Part shown: piece after piece, positions 6,184 through 60,557 of the stretch | How the letters are laid out: every line of letters starts with the position of its first letter | How positions within the stretch are numbered: the first letter of the stretch is position 1 | From: Dimorphilus gyrociliatus | Lineage: Eukaryota; Animalia; Annelida | Assembly: GCA_904063045.1 (NCBI GenBank) | Contig: CAJFCJ010000006.1 | Coordinates: 3,488,408-3,552,407 of the forward strand | DNA: 64,000 bases | Reading direction: 5' to 3' | Translations under genes and position numbers: made by a program | Notes under the pieces: generated by a model | Database searches by the model: none | The model's input: only the letters and a program-made list of their open reading frames with translations | Told to the model about the DNA's origin: nothing

Positions 6184-8228
6184 TTATTCAAAAATTACTT
6201 CTACATCGAAAAGAACGATGTTCTCCGACATTGATGATCGAAACAATTGGGCATGTTGCCAAGCGTTATCTCCCTGACCCTCGCTTAATAAAGCCGTCAA
6301 GGTCACACGATTCCTTCCCTTCGAGAAATCGTTTACATTGGTATCTTCGACATTAGCTTCAAAATAGAATATATGTTAATAATATTGAATAATTATGCTA
6401 CCTGTTTGATATTACTTCTAATTCTTTGTATATCTTCATCTGATTTGACACTCCAGGTAACTTCTCCGTCAGAAAATGTTTTATGTATAAGCTTCACATT
6501 AAATTCTTTAATCTTTCCTCTTACATCTCTGAGATCAAACTTCCAAGATATTTTACCGAAATCATAACCAGGAACTCTCGCCAAATAAACCATTTTCCAG
6601 TCGTGCTCCTCCTTTCTAAATATATCTATACACTCAAAGAGCATTTCACGCCATCCGGAGACGGTGGAATTATCCGATAATCTCCTGTATTCATCTTTTG
6701 AGGGACAATATTGAAGATGAATACGCTTGGATTTTGCTTCCTTTTCTGTGGGTTTTATAACGTACGGTCTAAATCTTTTCCCCGTTTCTCCTCTGGATAA
6801 ACGCCATGCTAAAGAACCAGAAGTTCTTCCTTGACCCTCTGAATCTAACGTAGCTTTTTCAATCATCAACTCAAAAAGTTCTTTACAAATTCTTCTTTGA
6901 AGCACTAGCTTTCTCCCAGGAGTGAGTAGTAACGTTCTCCATCGATTAATTCTTATATTATGTATGGTTTTAGCTAGCCATTCTTCTCTCACCTACGTTA
7001 ATTGATTCCAAATTAAGTGATATAATTTGAGGAAATTGGCTGTAATTGACTTTTATACCTGAGTACGTCTCGCTAATACTGCCTGATGATTATTTGAATA
7101 TCTCCAGGTAACATCTTGGAGATCGTCATGGGAAAATCCAAAAACGTACATTTGCTCTTTATCCCATCCTTTTTCGTAGGTTAAAGGTAGATCAAAGGCA
7201 TTTTCACACGGGTCTACATGAATATAGCGATCTTGCGCAATTGAAAAGAACTCACACCATACATGATCCTAGAATAAATATAGAGAATGTTAAGAAAAAT
7301 CTTTGAAAAATGACTATATTACTTGATTATCTGTTATGAAACGAGCTTCAAATCCTAAAGTTCTGAGAAATAAATAGAAACAGTTAGCCCACTCTCCACA
7401 TCGACCTCGTCTACTTTCGAGTAACTTTTCAGGATCATTGTAACGGGGAAATCGGGTACCGTGGCCACATTTTTTACAAGTGTGAATTTCAACTCGCTGG
7501 GCCATGTATTTACTCTCTTCCGGGGTTGGAACTCCAGCTTTGCCACCAACCGATTCGCCCCCGCATATCTCACAAGGTAAAGTGTCAACCCACTTAAAGA
7601 AACTAGTTTTAAACCAAGTCAGCAAGAAAATAATGATAACGTCTCGAAATTCAGGATTCGAGAACAGAGGTGGTCCAGGAAAATTCTTACTGGCGTCTTC
7701 AATTAGAGTTTCCATGGGTAAAACGGATCTAGCTCTGTCCTGTTTATGGACTTGTTCAAATATTGTCATACGTTCCAAGTTCCGTGTTAATTCCAAATAC
7801 ATTTGACTTTCATTTTGCTAAATTATTAATAAATATAGTAATAAAGGCTTAAGTTATACTTATTAATATTATAAAACTATTATGACTCTTACAATTAGAG
7901 TAGTTTGATTTACACTAGCAGATATTCTTAAACGGGCATTTTGCAGATTAATTATCATTCTGTTTAATGCTACTAAATTGCCATTTTGAGGGAAAATGTA
8001 ACCTTCTTCTGTTTCTGTGAAACCCATATCAAATAGACATTTTTTAGCCCCTGGAACATTTATCACTTTTTCTTTGATAATTTTATTCCCAGAGCGAATT
8101 TTTCGATATTTTTCGTCCTGTGGATGTTTGATAATATTGTATCCTATTTGTAAAAGAATATCAACAGTTTCTAAGGACACATTTCTGGGATTAGATATAA
8201 GCTGTCTAATTGATTCTTCCATTTTCAC
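6184..8228 (-). CDS. NGLY1: Peptide-N(4)-(N-acetyl-beta-glucosaminyl)asparagine amidase (PNGase)
   Basis: N-terminal PUB domain ([15 protein letters not shown]), transglutaminase core with RCGEWANC and DHVWCE, zinc CxxC pairs, and a C-terminal PAW domain ending [13 protein letters not shown]...FE* at 6184. Confidence 0.95.
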
Positions 8229-56496: not shown

Positions 56497-56514
56497 GTCA
56501 CGTGACATCTATAA
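56497..56514 (+). promoter_or_regulatory. Ferritin A promoter: GTCACGTGAC palindrome plus TATA-like element
   Basis: GTCACGTGAC at 56497-56506 followed by CTATAA; the same arrangement occurs at ferritin B. Confidence 0.5.
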
Positions 56515-56542
56515 TTGTGTTGTTTCTGAGAGCGCCATTCTA

Positions 56543-56574
56543 TTGCTTAGCTGCGTCAGGGAACGTACAAGCAA
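56543..56574 (+). promoter_or_regulatory. Iron-responsive element (ferritin type) in the 5' UTR, loop CAGGGA
   Basis: TTGCTT-A-G-C(bulge)-TGCGT-[CAGGGA]-ACGTA-C-AAGCAA folds by eye into the ferritin IRE architecture. Confidence 0.8.
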
Positions 56575-56661
56575 GAAAAGCGTTGAATTTTTCACAGAAA
56601 ATTCTTTATTATCGTTAAACGATTACTCTACCGTGCTAATTTTATTGAATTACGGAAGAAT

Positions 56662-57685
56662 ATGTCTGCAATTCGTCAAAATTTTCACTCTGATTGTGAG
56701 GCTGCCATCAACAAGCTGATAAACTATAAACTACATATTTCTTACGTTTATCAGTCCATGGTATAATATACTTTAGTTTTTCTTTTTAGTTATAATATTC
56801 AAAATCCTAGTTTTAGTAAAATATTAACAAAAATACAACGACAAAAATCCGGTAAAGGAAATGACCTTGAAAACGTGACTTGCTTGACACAGACAACTCC
56901 AGGTTAAAAAAAACAGCTGTAAAATAAACATCTGATTACGTAATATATCGTAATATTTCATAAAAACCAATGAAAAATATTCAAGTGCTTTTAATATTAA
57001 GTAATTTATTATTACTTATATACTAATCACATAAATCAATAAAAACAACTAAGTTGTAATCAATTTTTGTTAACTTTCTGCATTGGATCCTGTAAAATAC
57101 ATTTTATATTGACTGAAATTTAATGTATATTTTGAAATAGGCTTGGCATTTTGATCGTGATGATGTCGCCTTACCTGGATTTCACAAGTTCTTCAAGCAC
57201 ATGTCAAATGAGAAACGCAATACTGCTACAATGCTGATGAAATGTCAAAATCTGCGTGGTGGAAGGATCATTTATCAAGATATTAAGGTAATTTGTAACA
57301 TTAAAAACTATAAATGTATAATATAGTAGTGGTAATTTTATCTCAGAGTCCAGAAAAGGAAAAATGGGGATGCGGTTTGGAATGTATGCAAGTAGCTTTG
57401 AACTTGGAGAAGAAAGTTAACGAGAATCTTTTGGAAATGCATAAACTAGCTTCTTCCCATAAGGATCCTATTTTATGCGACATGCTGGAAGATGACTATC
57501 TTCGTAAGCAAGTTCACAGCATCAGACGCTTGGGAAAATTCACAACCCAACTTAAACGTGTTGGTTCTGGTTTGGGAGAATTCACTTTTGATCATGAAGT
57601 TCTCCAAGATTTTGAACCAGGAGTTGCAAGAAAAGCTAACAATCAACAGATTGTAACCAAACTTAACGAAGATACCCAAAAATGA
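56662..57685 (+). CDS. Cytosolic ferritin paralog A, ferroxidase-deficient, C-terminally extended
   Basis: Exons 56662-56760, 57141-57287 and 57347-57685. [18 protein letters not shown] and LGEFTFD motifs are present; ferroxidase ligands are substituted. Confidence 0.95.
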
Positions 57686-58519
57686 ATATCATTGATTATT
57701 CTAAAATGCATTTCCCGTTGATTACTTTAAAATTGATTCTATCAATAGTATTTTGCTGAACCTGAAATCCTGATCCTCCCAACTGACAATAAATAAACTT
57801 CAATTGAAAATTTAAATAATACAAAAAAAATTACGCAAAGTATTTTTCTTTTTTCGTTAAGCTATTAACACATCTTAAACTTGGAAAGAAAATGAGGTTA
57901 ATAGGATATTTAACATTATTATCATCCGTCTATTATCAAGTAGAGGTTATTATGGTAGCTTGTAAGAATGTTCAAATTACAATTTGTACTGGGAGTAAAG
58001 TTTGAACAAAAGAATAAAAGAGATATCTAGGTTTACATATAAAACAATTAGTATTTATTTGAAATAAGAAGAAAAGCTTATTGAAATTTTTTGTAATATT
58101 TCTTTACGATAATTCTAAAGATTAATATAATCCCACAGACAACTCTATGTTGAGTCATTTGTAATTATTTCTCTTTTGTTGAAAATATTCCGTTCCTGTT
58201 GGAAAGAAAAAAACTGATATAAATATTTTACTTTATACTTTAATAGGTTGGGGGAATTTCCTATAAACTTCTTATAGTGCAAAGAGACTATTTTTTGAAA
58301 AGTCATAGCTATTATGGAAAATGCTCTCTGGTGCAAACAAGACCTATTTTGAAGATAAGTGCAGCAATGATTCACTTTAATAAGTATAGCCGTTTACAAA
58401 AATTTTGTTCATGTCCTAAAAAATACAACCTCGATCTAATGACTAACAAAACTGAAACTGAGAGGAGAAGATTTCAATATATTATATGGACTAAACGCTG
58501 CAAAAAAACGATATTTAAT

Positions 58520-58705
58520 ATGAAGAGATTAATCCTAACGTTTAGTGGAATAAAACGTTTAAATTATTTAACAAATAAGGAAATATCCAATAGAACTGAA
58601 GATAGAAAGAGAAAGTTCTTTTTTATTACATATATAGTTGCTATGTTAGTAGTCATCATCATCATCTTAGATAACTATTACCAAGACAATAGAGAAGGTC
58701 AATAG
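58520..58705 (+). CDS. Possible small single-pass membrane protein between the ferritins
   Basis: ATG ORF (part of a longer open frame from 58277) with RKRK followed by the hydrophobic FFFITYIVAMLVVIIIIL. No homolog recognised. Confidence 0.25.
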   Translation: MKRLILTFSGIKRLNYLTNKEISNRTEDRKRKFFFITYIVAMLVVIIIILDNYYQDNREGQ

Positions 58706-59489
58706 AAAAACATTTACATCACAACTAAAGTCGAAAGTCTCTACTAAGCTTTTTGATAAATCAAACGAAAACAAAGTAGAAGTATTGTTTCACTTCTCTA
58801 AATAGGTGTAAGGTTAACCACGAAAATAGATTTAAGAACATATGCGTTTTTTCATTAAATACAATATGGTATTTCTATTAAGTTAACGTTGGATACTTGA
58901 TCGATTTCTAGTAAATATTCTTTATGCCATTCAAGAAAAATATCTACACTTCTACATATAAATGTCTATATATATATATATATATATTCGTTTTGACACG
59001 ATATGAAATTATCTAATCTAAATTGATTATCAGATATATTAAAATTTACAGATTTATTTAACAATGTCGAATCAAAGTTATAGATTCTTTAAGATTCTAT
59101 GAAACAATATAGAATAGGCGTAGGAAAACTGTCCAGACAAATGCACTTAATAAAAATTGAAATTTATCTTTTTCTAGTTCAGATCAATTTTCAAATATTG
59201 ATAGATATTTTGAACAGAATAATCTTTTTAGCACAAATATCTTGGGTTTAATATCAGTTCTCTATTTATCATCTTCAATTTGAGAAGGTTTTAAGTGTAA
59301 ATATCTCGAGTTTAACAAGATTCCATAATATATTTTGATAACTATAATTCTTAAAAATATTCAAACTGCTTCTGCTTATGTAAAACCAAAAAAAATGAAC
59401 GATATGTACTAATTATTTAACCCTAATTGCTCGGAAGATAATGTCGAGTAAACAACACGTGACTCGAGAATGTAGGCCGTGTATAGCAA

Positions 59490-59575: not shown

Positions 59576-59609
59576 TTTGCTTTGCTACGTGAGAGAACGT
59601 ACAAGCAAA
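59576..59609 (+). promoter_or_regulatory. Iron-responsive element (ferritin type) in the 5' UTR, loop GAGAGA
   Basis: TTTGCTT-T-G-C(bulge)-TACGT-[GAGAGA]-ACGTA-C-AAGCAAA. Confidence 0.8.
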
Positions 59610-59672: not shown

Positions 59673-60557
59673 ATGTCTTCGATACGTCAAAATTTCAATT
59701 CTGAATGTGAAGCTGCTATCAACAAGCAGATAAACATGGAGCTCTATGCTTCCTACGTTTATCAAGCTATGGTAAGATTTTTTGAAAAACATTTATCCGA
59801 AAAAGAAGGGAATGTATTTTGCATAGTAGCGAGTAGAATGTTAGGCGAAACAAGTGTTATTAATTCAGGTTACAGCAAAGTGACTAGAATGACCTTGTCG
59901 CCATTTTGATATGTTTATGAATCAAATAACAAATAAGTTTAGACGCAGCATGCAAAAACCCTTTCTTAAGCTGTTTTACCCTAAAATCATTTCTGAGTCT
60001 GTAAAAAAATGGCAAAGTATAAGCGTTTTAGTGCGAACGTTCTTTTTTTAGAACATCCGCCATGTTGACTCAAATATGAAGGGTGAAATATTTTGCAAAT
60101 CATCATGACTAAAAAAATTTTAATGAATGTTTTTCTGTAACAGGCTTTCTTTTTTGACCGCGATGATGTGGCTCTTAAAGGATTCCACAACTTCTTTAAG
60201 AAGTCATCGGAAGAGGAAAGAGAACATGCTGAAAAGCTTATGAAGTACCAAAATATGAGAGGTGGTCGCATTATCCTTCAAGATATCAAAAGACCTGACA
60301 AAGAAGAGTGGGGAACTGGCTGTGAAGCCATGCAAACTGCTCTTGTTTTGGAAAAGAAGGTGAATGAAAGTTTGTTGGAAATTCACAGATTATCTGACAA
60401 ACACGGAGACCCACAATTGTGCGACTTCTTGGAAGGTGAATACCTTAAGGAGCAAGTTGACGCTATTAAGCAACTCTCTGACTATGTCACACAATTGAAA
60501 CGTGTTGGACCTGGTTTGGGAGAATTCACTTTCGACAAGGAGGTTCTCCAAGAATAA
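59673..60557 (+). CDS. Cytosolic ferritin paralog B, H-type with an intact ferroxidase centre
   Basis: Exons 59673-59771 and 60144-60557. E27 (MELYASY), E61/E62/H65 (SEEEREHAE), E107 and Q141 are all present. Confidence 0.97.

Follow-up and report, generated by a model that had tools for sequence, protein, structure and literature searches.

A transcribed and selectively constrained tandem ferritin paralog of the annelid Dimorphilus gyrociliatus has lost key ferroxidase ligands and appears to parallel the vertebrate light chain

A 64,000-nucleotide stretch of the genome of the annelid Dimorphilus gyrociliatus (the window, within which all positions below are given) contains two ferritin genes in tandem. 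The upstream copy, gene A, is transcribed, correctly spliced and under purifying selection, and it lacks the complete di-iron ligand set of a catalytic H/M-type ferritin. The loss of its ferroxidase site appears to be convergent with that of the vertebrate ferritin light chain, an independent parallel that sequence comparison supports well. We somewhat favor the reading in which gene A encodes a minor, noncatalytic subunit that is made under the same control as the neighboring gene B and is built into B-rich cages.

Gene A comprises three exons on the plus strand (56662-56760, 57141-57287 and 57347-57685) whose translation gives a product of 194 aa. Exon 1 (codons 1 to 33) begins with the first AUG of the transcript, there being no upstream AUG in the 5' untranslated region (UTR). 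Exon 2 is 147 nt long (codons 34 to 82), and exon 3 encodes the remainder of the core with helices C, D and E (57347-57604, codons 83 to 168), followed by a C-terminal extension that is absent from canonical ferritins and by the stop codon (57605-57685, codons 169 to 194). Intron 1 (56761-57140, 380 nt) follows the residues ...YQSM and intron 2 (57288-57346, 59 nt) the residues ...QDIK, both ancestral ferritin positions; all introns are in phase 0 with GT..AG ends. The 3' UTR (57686-57797) was assigned from an AATAAA at 57788-57797 read from the sequence, and RNA coverage reaches 57773. Exons 2 and 3 each exceeded the gathering score of Pfam Ferritin (PF00210), with E values of 8e-8 and 7e-12, respectively, and comparison with solved ferritins gave an E value of 1e-38, the nearest solved relatives being ordinary invertebrate ferritins. 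Gene A has neither a signal peptide nor an N-terminal extension. Its exon 3 is 100% identical to the public protein DgyrCDS5090, a model of 141 aa that begins at an internal methionine and is missing 53 N-terminal residues, including helix A (56662-57212). Since RNA contigs join exon 1 to exon 2, the true product of gene A is 53 residues longer than DgyrCDS5090, and the public annotation is corrected by the transcript evidence.

Gene B lies 3 kb downstream of gene A on the same strand (59673-60557, plus strand; exons 59673-59771 and 60144-60557) and encodes an intact H/M-type ferritin of 170 aa, with a Pfam Ferritin match at E 5e-31 and, as its best solved relatives, invertebrate ferritins at E 3e-64. 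The products of the two genes are 67% identical over a 168-residue core. No 100% identical protein was returned for gene B by the protein search, and the gene may be missing or mis-modelled in the public protein set.

Apart from the worm's own model, a protein search with exon 3 of gene A returned a single cluster of orthologs (P0002), which was located on Logan contigs L001 to L004 of a relative, referred to here as the second species. A syntenic tandem A/B pair was present on contigs L001 to L003, and the layout of L001 comprises the same upstream genes, a three-exon A ortholog, a small open reading frame (ORF) and a two-exon B ortholog. The small ORF of D. gyrociliatus between the ferritin genes (58277-58705, plus strand) has a hydrophobic, tail-anchor-like C-terminal segment (…IVAMLVVIIIILD…); the ORF at the same place in the second species (L001 9886-10191) is weakly similar to it (30% identity, E 8e-4). 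An unspliced contig from one of the RNA runs described below (X4) covers this region from 58032 to 58952. The same intergenic region also contains a short (AT)n microsatellite at 58968-58990.

In human H numbering, which is gene A's own number plus 4, gene A is altered at K27 (own number K23, replacing E27; 56728-56730, exon 1), at K62 (K58, replacing E62; 57213-57215), N64 (N60, replacing E64), T65 (T61, replacing H65; 57222-57224) and T67 (T63, replacing E67) in exon 2, and at K140 (K136, replacing E140) in exon 3. It retains Y34, E61 (E57, exon 2) and, in exon 3, E107 (E103), D131 (D127), E134 (E130) and Q141 (Q137). Across the seven ferroxidase ligand columns (E27, Y34, E61, E62, H65, E107 and Q141), gene A therefore reads KYEKTEQ. 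The protein search supplied the 107 nearest full-length ferritins for alignment; 106 of them read EYEEHEQ at these columns and one reads HYEEHEQ. The A ortholog of the second species reads KYEKFEE, and its B ortholog reads EYEEHEQ; neither A copy has the complete ligand set. The ligand changes of gene A are far from the chance variation of the family. Alignment with human H numbering showed the residue-level description of gene A in the original prediction to be exact, and gene B, as had also been stated there, has E27, Y34, E61, E62, H65, E107 and Q141 all present.

The A ortholog of the second species keeps K27 and K62 and carries K64, F65, M67, N131 and E141; positions 64, 65, 67, 131 and 141 all differ between the two A orthologs. 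H65, D131 and Q141 are invariant in the 107 ferritins, yet these positions differ between the A orthologs. The A-specific substitutions that are fixed in both species cluster near the cavity face and the site that once bound metal (Q23L, E27K, Y29H, K57H, E62K, K68M and E140K), and the combination of Lys62 with a retained Glu107 is present in gene A (K58 and E103) and in its ortholog. Within the acidic nucleation cluster (E57/E60/E61/E64/E67), E61 alone is kept in the A copies: position 57 is H, position 60 is N or C, position 64 is N or K, and position 67 is T or M. The claim that A, unlike L chains, is without this cluster was borne out, with E64 and E67 replaced by different residues in the two species.

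A protein that keeps part of the site could be altered rather than dead, handling iron or another metal through a site rebuilt from E61, E107, Y34, Q141 and new histidines. Gene A of D. gyrociliatus retains four of the seven ligands, and three A-specific histidines (Y29H, K57H and K169H) are fixed in both species, with the histidine content doubled (9 to 12 in the A copies versus 4 to 5 in the B copies and 4 to 6 across the canonical ferritins tabulated). However, lysines occupy the bridging and terminal carboxylate positions (27 and 62) in both species, and position 65 is T or F and position 141 is Q or E depending on the species, so that no common alternative ligand set is conserved. Moreover, in L chains it is a lysine at position 62 that takes the place of the iron-binding site (PMC11396501). 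We consider a rebuilt site improbable, and the noncatalytic-subunit reading is carried forward below.

The expression of gene A was assessed from the contigs of four public RNA runs (X1 to X4) that contain parts of the window; X1 is a coral metatranscriptome, X2 an invertebrate transcriptome library and X3 a marine metatranscriptome. One contig of 788 nt from X4 spans 56548-57773, with both introns of gene A removed exactly at the predicted junctions. Both junctions were also found in X1 and the first in X2; the joint across intron 1 (380 nt skipped) is thus seen in three runs (X1, X2 and X4) and that across intron 2 (59 nt skipped) in two (X1 and X4). Spliced gene A transcripts were recovered from three independent studies (X1, X2 and X4), and spliced contigs of gene B were found in all four runs. 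The splice sites of gene A had been described as intact, which these contigs confirm, and the possibility that gene A is not expressed is contradicted by them. Transcripts of A and B co-occur in the same four runs. Contig word depths, which are a poor measure of level, were 8 for A versus 91 for B, 3 versus 30, 4 versus 23, and 4,499 versus approximately 150,000, and gene A is probably a minor transcript relative to B.

The contig from X3 (57352-57719) represents a third lineage that is approximately 95% identical to gene A, with four amino-acid and four synonymous changes in the core of exon 3 (codons 83 to 168). Near-identical D. gyrociliatus ferritin transcripts were found in the coral, invertebrate and marine metatranscriptomes (X1 to X3), which suggests that D. 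gyrociliatus or its close kin often occurs unnoticed in samples of this kind.

Neutral evolution of the gene A core is excluded. Between the two full A orthologs compared, the core had a dN/dS of 0.08 to 0.15 (168 codons, four methods), against 0.055 to 0.084 for the B pair, values that are approximate because the dS between the species is approximately 1 and near saturation. Nei-Gojobori counts for the A core gave a pN of 0.107 versus a pS of 0.635 (Fisher p 3.7e-26). The possibility that gene A evolves neutrally, which had been set against the original prediction, is contradicted by these values. Differences between the A orthologs were not significantly concentrated on highly conserved columns (10 of 27, versus 4 of 18 in the B pair; Fisher p 0.34). 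Comparison of the orthologs indicates that constraint is gone from the iron-handling residues of A and still strong on the fold. That the fold is strongly constrained although the iron-handling residues drift shows that gene A retains some function.

A decaying duplicate, that is, a young pseudogene whose frame is still open, would fit the loss of catalytic residues, the faster evolution of the protein relative to B (dN between orthologs of 0.115 for A versus 0.058 for B) and the apparently lower transcript depth. However, two species at a dS of approximately 1 have both preserved the open frame, the two introns, the first AUG, the promoter block and the 5' hairpin, the core has a dN/dS of approximately 0.1 with a p of 3.7e-26 against neutrality, and correctly spliced mRNA is present in three studies. 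Ancestral introns, selection and expression together rule out a pseudogene, and we give this alternative hardly any credence. The argument that an intact frame and intact splice sites speak against a pseudogene is thus strengthened by spliced mRNA from three studies and by purifying selection on the core.

The origin of gene A was examined by maximum likelihood, in a tree that combined A and B with their orthologs and 22 further ferritins (three named annelid sequences, named mollusc, chelicerate and hemichordate sequences, and unnamed environmental sequences). The four A and B genes of the two species group in a single clade with a support of 100/100, apart from the other sampled ferritins. 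The stem of the A pair has a length of 0.56 to 0.72 substitutions per site, with 21 fixed stem changes in A versus 1 in B, and a relative-rate comparison gave 35 versus 9 changes (chi-square 15.4). Six derived residues are common to all four A/B genes. In the ferritin genes of Magallana gigas (L005) and Lottia gigantea (L006), introns are found after ...YQSM, after ...QDIK (with an exon 2 of 147 nt) and before MCDF/MQDF; gene A has the first two of these and gene B the first only, in both species.

Because of this intron pattern and the tree, gene A is best explained as a DNA-level tandem duplicate that predates both the loss of the intron from B and the species split. A retrocopy is ruled out by the introns at ancestral positions, and their retention, with the tree, likewise indicates that gene A is not a recent copy of present-day B. 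There was no indication of gene conversion between A and B, as the orthologs group by gene and not by species; the sole hint was a match of 11 of 15 nt after the stop position, described below. Collectively, these data point to a tandem duplication specific to this lineage, after which A changed in a burst and then came under constraint. An independent origin by local duplication, as originally predicted, is upheld by the 100/100 clade, the same tandem order in both species and the six shared derived residues. The claim of independence rests on the tree and not on the absence of A-like proteins elsewhere; a word-based search with exon 3 found none elsewhere, by a method that sees only proteins sharing 5-residue words.

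Gene A extends 26 residues past the end point of gene B, and the TAA stop codon of B aligns with TTT in both A orthologs. In D. gyrociliatus, 11 of the 15 nt after the stop position match the 3' UTR of gene B (p of approximately 7e-4 at a fixed position), a match that is absent in the second species. These findings suggest that the tail arose through loss of the stop codon and read-through into the former 3' UTR. The tail is 26 aa long in both orthologs, its sequence has a dN/dS of approximately 1, and it is Q/N-rich in one species. A 1-nt deletion at 57651 in the X3 lineage would shorten it by 10 residues, although this was seen in one contig at a depth of 4 and may be an error. The tail had no matches among solved chains. 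Given the geometry of ferritin, residues added at the C terminus after helix E would be expected to project into the cavity.

The A copies also differ from other ferritins in charge. The pI is 8.7 for gene A and 6.3 for its ortholog, versus 5.1 to 5.5 for B and the other ferritins, and the core of gene A has 21 acidic residues versus 30, a loss of approximately 9. There are 5 cysteines in A versus 2 to 3 in B. Being near-neutral to basic and having a tail of 26 residues inside, the subunit might assemble into cages of its own or have a role unrelated to iron storage, which weighs against a place as a minor subunit of B-rich cages. The absence of the acidic nucleation cluster, to which L chains owe their part in mineralisation, weighs in the same direction, as "L-like" then covers only positions 62 and 107.

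Gene A may have left iron storage altogether, its product assembling by itself, as cages or dimers, with an interior that is inert to iron, de-acidified and partly filled by the tail, and serving, for example, as a stress chaperone like artemin of Artemia or as a carrier of another ligand or metal. The pI shift of 1 to 3.5 units, the increase in histidine and cysteine relative to B, the replacement of the 3-fold channel residue D131 by N in the second species, and a strongly constrained fold in which the iron-handling residues drift are all consistent with such a departure. Like artemin, A has both its ferroxidase centre and its nucleation site modified, together with an extension at the C terminus that is expected inside the cavity (PMC9742257). 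However, the C-terminal helix of artemin is functionally important, whereas the sequence of the A tail evolves neutrally (dN/dS of approximately 1) and may have been cut by 10 residues in the third lineage. A conserved hairpin derived from the ferritin iron-responsive element (IRE) points to iron-linked control, and the nearest solved relatives of A are ordinary invertebrate ferritins, with no specific similarity to artemin and an independent origin. We regard an exit from iron storage as possible but unlikely, and the reading of gene A as a minor subunit of B-rich cages is retained in what follows.

An IRE-like hairpin precedes each of the two genes. That of gene A (56543-56574, plus strand) folds with a lower stem of TTGCTT/AAGCAA, an AGC/C internal loop, a 5-bp upper stem of TGCGT/ACGTA and the loop CAGGGA. 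That of gene B (59576-59609, plus strand) has the loop GAGAGA and a fold z of -2.1 and is identical in the second species. Both are cap-proximal, with a UGC/C-type internal loop between the lower stem and a 5-bp upper stem that ends in a six-base loop, and each forms a conserved island in the 5' region between the two species. The gene A contig of X4 starts at 56548, and the hairpin lies approximately 5 to 10 nt after the likely transcription start. Its upper stem is identical to that of the oyster (Magallana gigas) ferritin IRE (C TGCGT CAGTGA ACGTA in the oyster, C TGCGT CAGGGA ACGTA in gene A), and the upper stem of gene B (C TACGT GAGAGA ACGTA) is reported as identical to that of the Lottia ferritin IRE (C TACGT CAGTGT ATGTA).

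The IRE of gene A had been described as intact in the original prediction, and this held in part. Its architecture, a cap-proximal 5-bp upper stem that carries a six-base loop, with a bulged C five bases upstream of that loop, and its homology to the oyster ferritin IRE were confirmed; the loop CAGGGA, with G at the fourth position, departs from the canonical loop CAGWGH (PMC2896125). The Rfam IRE models (IRE_I and IRE_II) gave no match to either hairpin at E<=10, on 5 kb and on two 71-base stretches, and we therefore term the hairpins IRE-derived rather than canonical IREs. By sequence comparison, both hairpins descend from the ferritin IRE, with paralog-specific changes in the loop. Since each loop is conserved in the second species at a dS of approximately 1, these changes look functional rather than decayed.

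Upstream of the hairpin, gene A has a putative core promoter that consists of the palindrome GTCACGTGAC (CLEAR/E-box type; 56497-56506, plus strand) and a TATAAT (56510-56515, plus strand), separated by 3 nt (56507-56509). The palindrome is part of a perfectly conserved 17-nt block (the GAAGGTCACGTGACAT region), the flanks of which have otherwise diverged in the second species (L001, approximately 7930-7950). The promoter motifs reported for gene A were therefore found again, as the conserved upstream GTCACGTGAC and TATAAT. The promoter of gene B contains two CACGTG boxes and a TGACGTCA, which are conserved between the species.

We propose the following course of events for gene A as a minor subunit of B-rich cages. 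An H/M-type ferritin gene was duplicated in tandem in the lineage of Dimorphilus and its close relative, before the species split and before B lost intron 2. A burst of substitutions in A then dismantled the di-iron site, through E27K, E62K and the loss of H65. The same burst took away inner-surface carboxylates (E64, E67 and E140), lowered the net negative charge and probably abolished the stop codon, giving the 26-residue tail. Afterwards, the 168-residue fold came under strong purifying selection, with positions 64, 65, 67, 131 and 141 and the tail left to drift freely.

By analogy with the K62-E107 pair of the vertebrate L chain, K27 and K62 are predicted to pair with the retained E61 and E107, so that salt bridges would fill the former metal site. 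With that site so occupied, A would fold stably but would be unable to oxidise Fe(II). Two features of A, its transcription alongside B and its retention of a homologous cap-proximal IRE-type hairpin, make it most likely that A is produced under the same iron-linked control as B. Against such shared control, the loops CAGGGA and GAGAGA are unlike one another, neither is the canonical loop, and no IRE model matches them. Subunits of A would enter B-rich 24-mers as a minority, less acidic component, which may reduce the number of ferroxidase sites and alter the cavity surface.

A bolder reading would take the two loops as different settings on the same iron sensor (CAGGGA in A versus GAGAGA in B). 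Gene A would then encode an iron-regulated but iron-inert cage protein, in which reversed charges at the metal site and a former stop codon that is now read through have produced a nonacidic, tail-filled shell with a function other than iron storage, such as stress protection or the carriage of other cargo. We hold this reading to be doubtful; if true, it would constitute a second, independent, artemin-like exit from iron storage, observed at an earlier stage.

Noncatalytic ferritin subunits are textbook knowledge for vertebrates, in the form of the L chain, and for insects. The ferritins of lophotrochozoans are usually said to be of the H or M kind, with the ferroxidase centre complete. A literature search, which may have missed older shellfish work, turned up no account of an annelid or mollusc cytosolic ferritin without a ferroxidase site, and ferritin of D. 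gyrociliatus received one passing mention in a literature coverage that was incomplete. In the A/B pair, a dead subunit would have originated once more, recently and in a traceable way, adopting the E62K solution of the L chain without its nucleation chemistry. As the progenitor gene is still 3 kb away and an ortholog pair is at hand, the pair forms a compact natural experiment. It bears on which features of L chains a noncatalytic partner needs, on how constraint shifts after the loss of a catalytic site, and on the evolution of paralog-specific IRE loops.

Among known systems, the stress protein artemin, a ferritin homologue that acts as a diapause chaperone in Artemia, resembles A in its altered ferroxidase centre and nucleation site, in a changed 3-fold channel (in one species of A) and in a C-terminal extension expected within the cage (PMC9742257). 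Unlike A, artemin is 45 to 50 residues longer than ferritins and thiol-rich, with an N-terminal extension and a structured C-terminal helix F. In A, the tail has 26 residues and is unconstrained, there is no N-terminal extension, and only 5 cysteines are present; the two proteins show no specific sequence relationship. Artemin is not known to carry an IRE.

The secreted ferritin light-chain homologue (LCH) of insects offers a second comparison, as a noncatalytic partner of a catalytic subunit in an invertebrate, a role that is proposed for A. The genes for the insect ferritin subunits are adjacent. However, insect LCH is secreted by means of a signal peptide, diverged anciently and forms fixed H-L heterodimers, whereas A has no signal peptide and is a recent, lineage-specific derivative. 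A structure of an insect ferritin heteropolymer is cited in PMC11719527.

The H/M-type "soma" ferritins of lophotrochozoans (for example, those of Magallana, Lottia, Perinereis and Chaetopterus) have the fold of A, introns at the same first two positions, a 5' IRE stem homologous to that of A and 55 to 60% identity to it. Unlike A, they keep all seven ligands and the acidic inner surface, and none has the tail. On these sequence features, lophotrochozoan H/M-type ferritins appear to be the ancestral type from which A is derived.

The vertebrate light chain (FTL) is a further known system with which A can be compared. Like FTL, A is a cytosolic-type subunit, has Lys62 opposite Glu107, lies next to, or is expressed together with, an H-type gene, has a 5' IRE-type hairpin, and is predicted to have no ferroxidase activity. 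Position 141 is E in L chains, as it is in the A ortholog of the second species. Unlike FTL, A groups with the worm's own H/M-type gene B (100/100) rather than sharing descent with FTL, has K27 and not Y27, lacks the acidic nucleation residues (E64 and E67 being replaced), and is near-neutral to basic instead of acidic. It also has the 26-residue C-terminal tail and a noncanonical hairpin loop, and co-assembly, which is established for FTL, is only proposed for A. In L ferritin, a salt bridge between K62 and E107 replaces the iron site (PMC11396501), and gene A would have arrived at the same solution independently.
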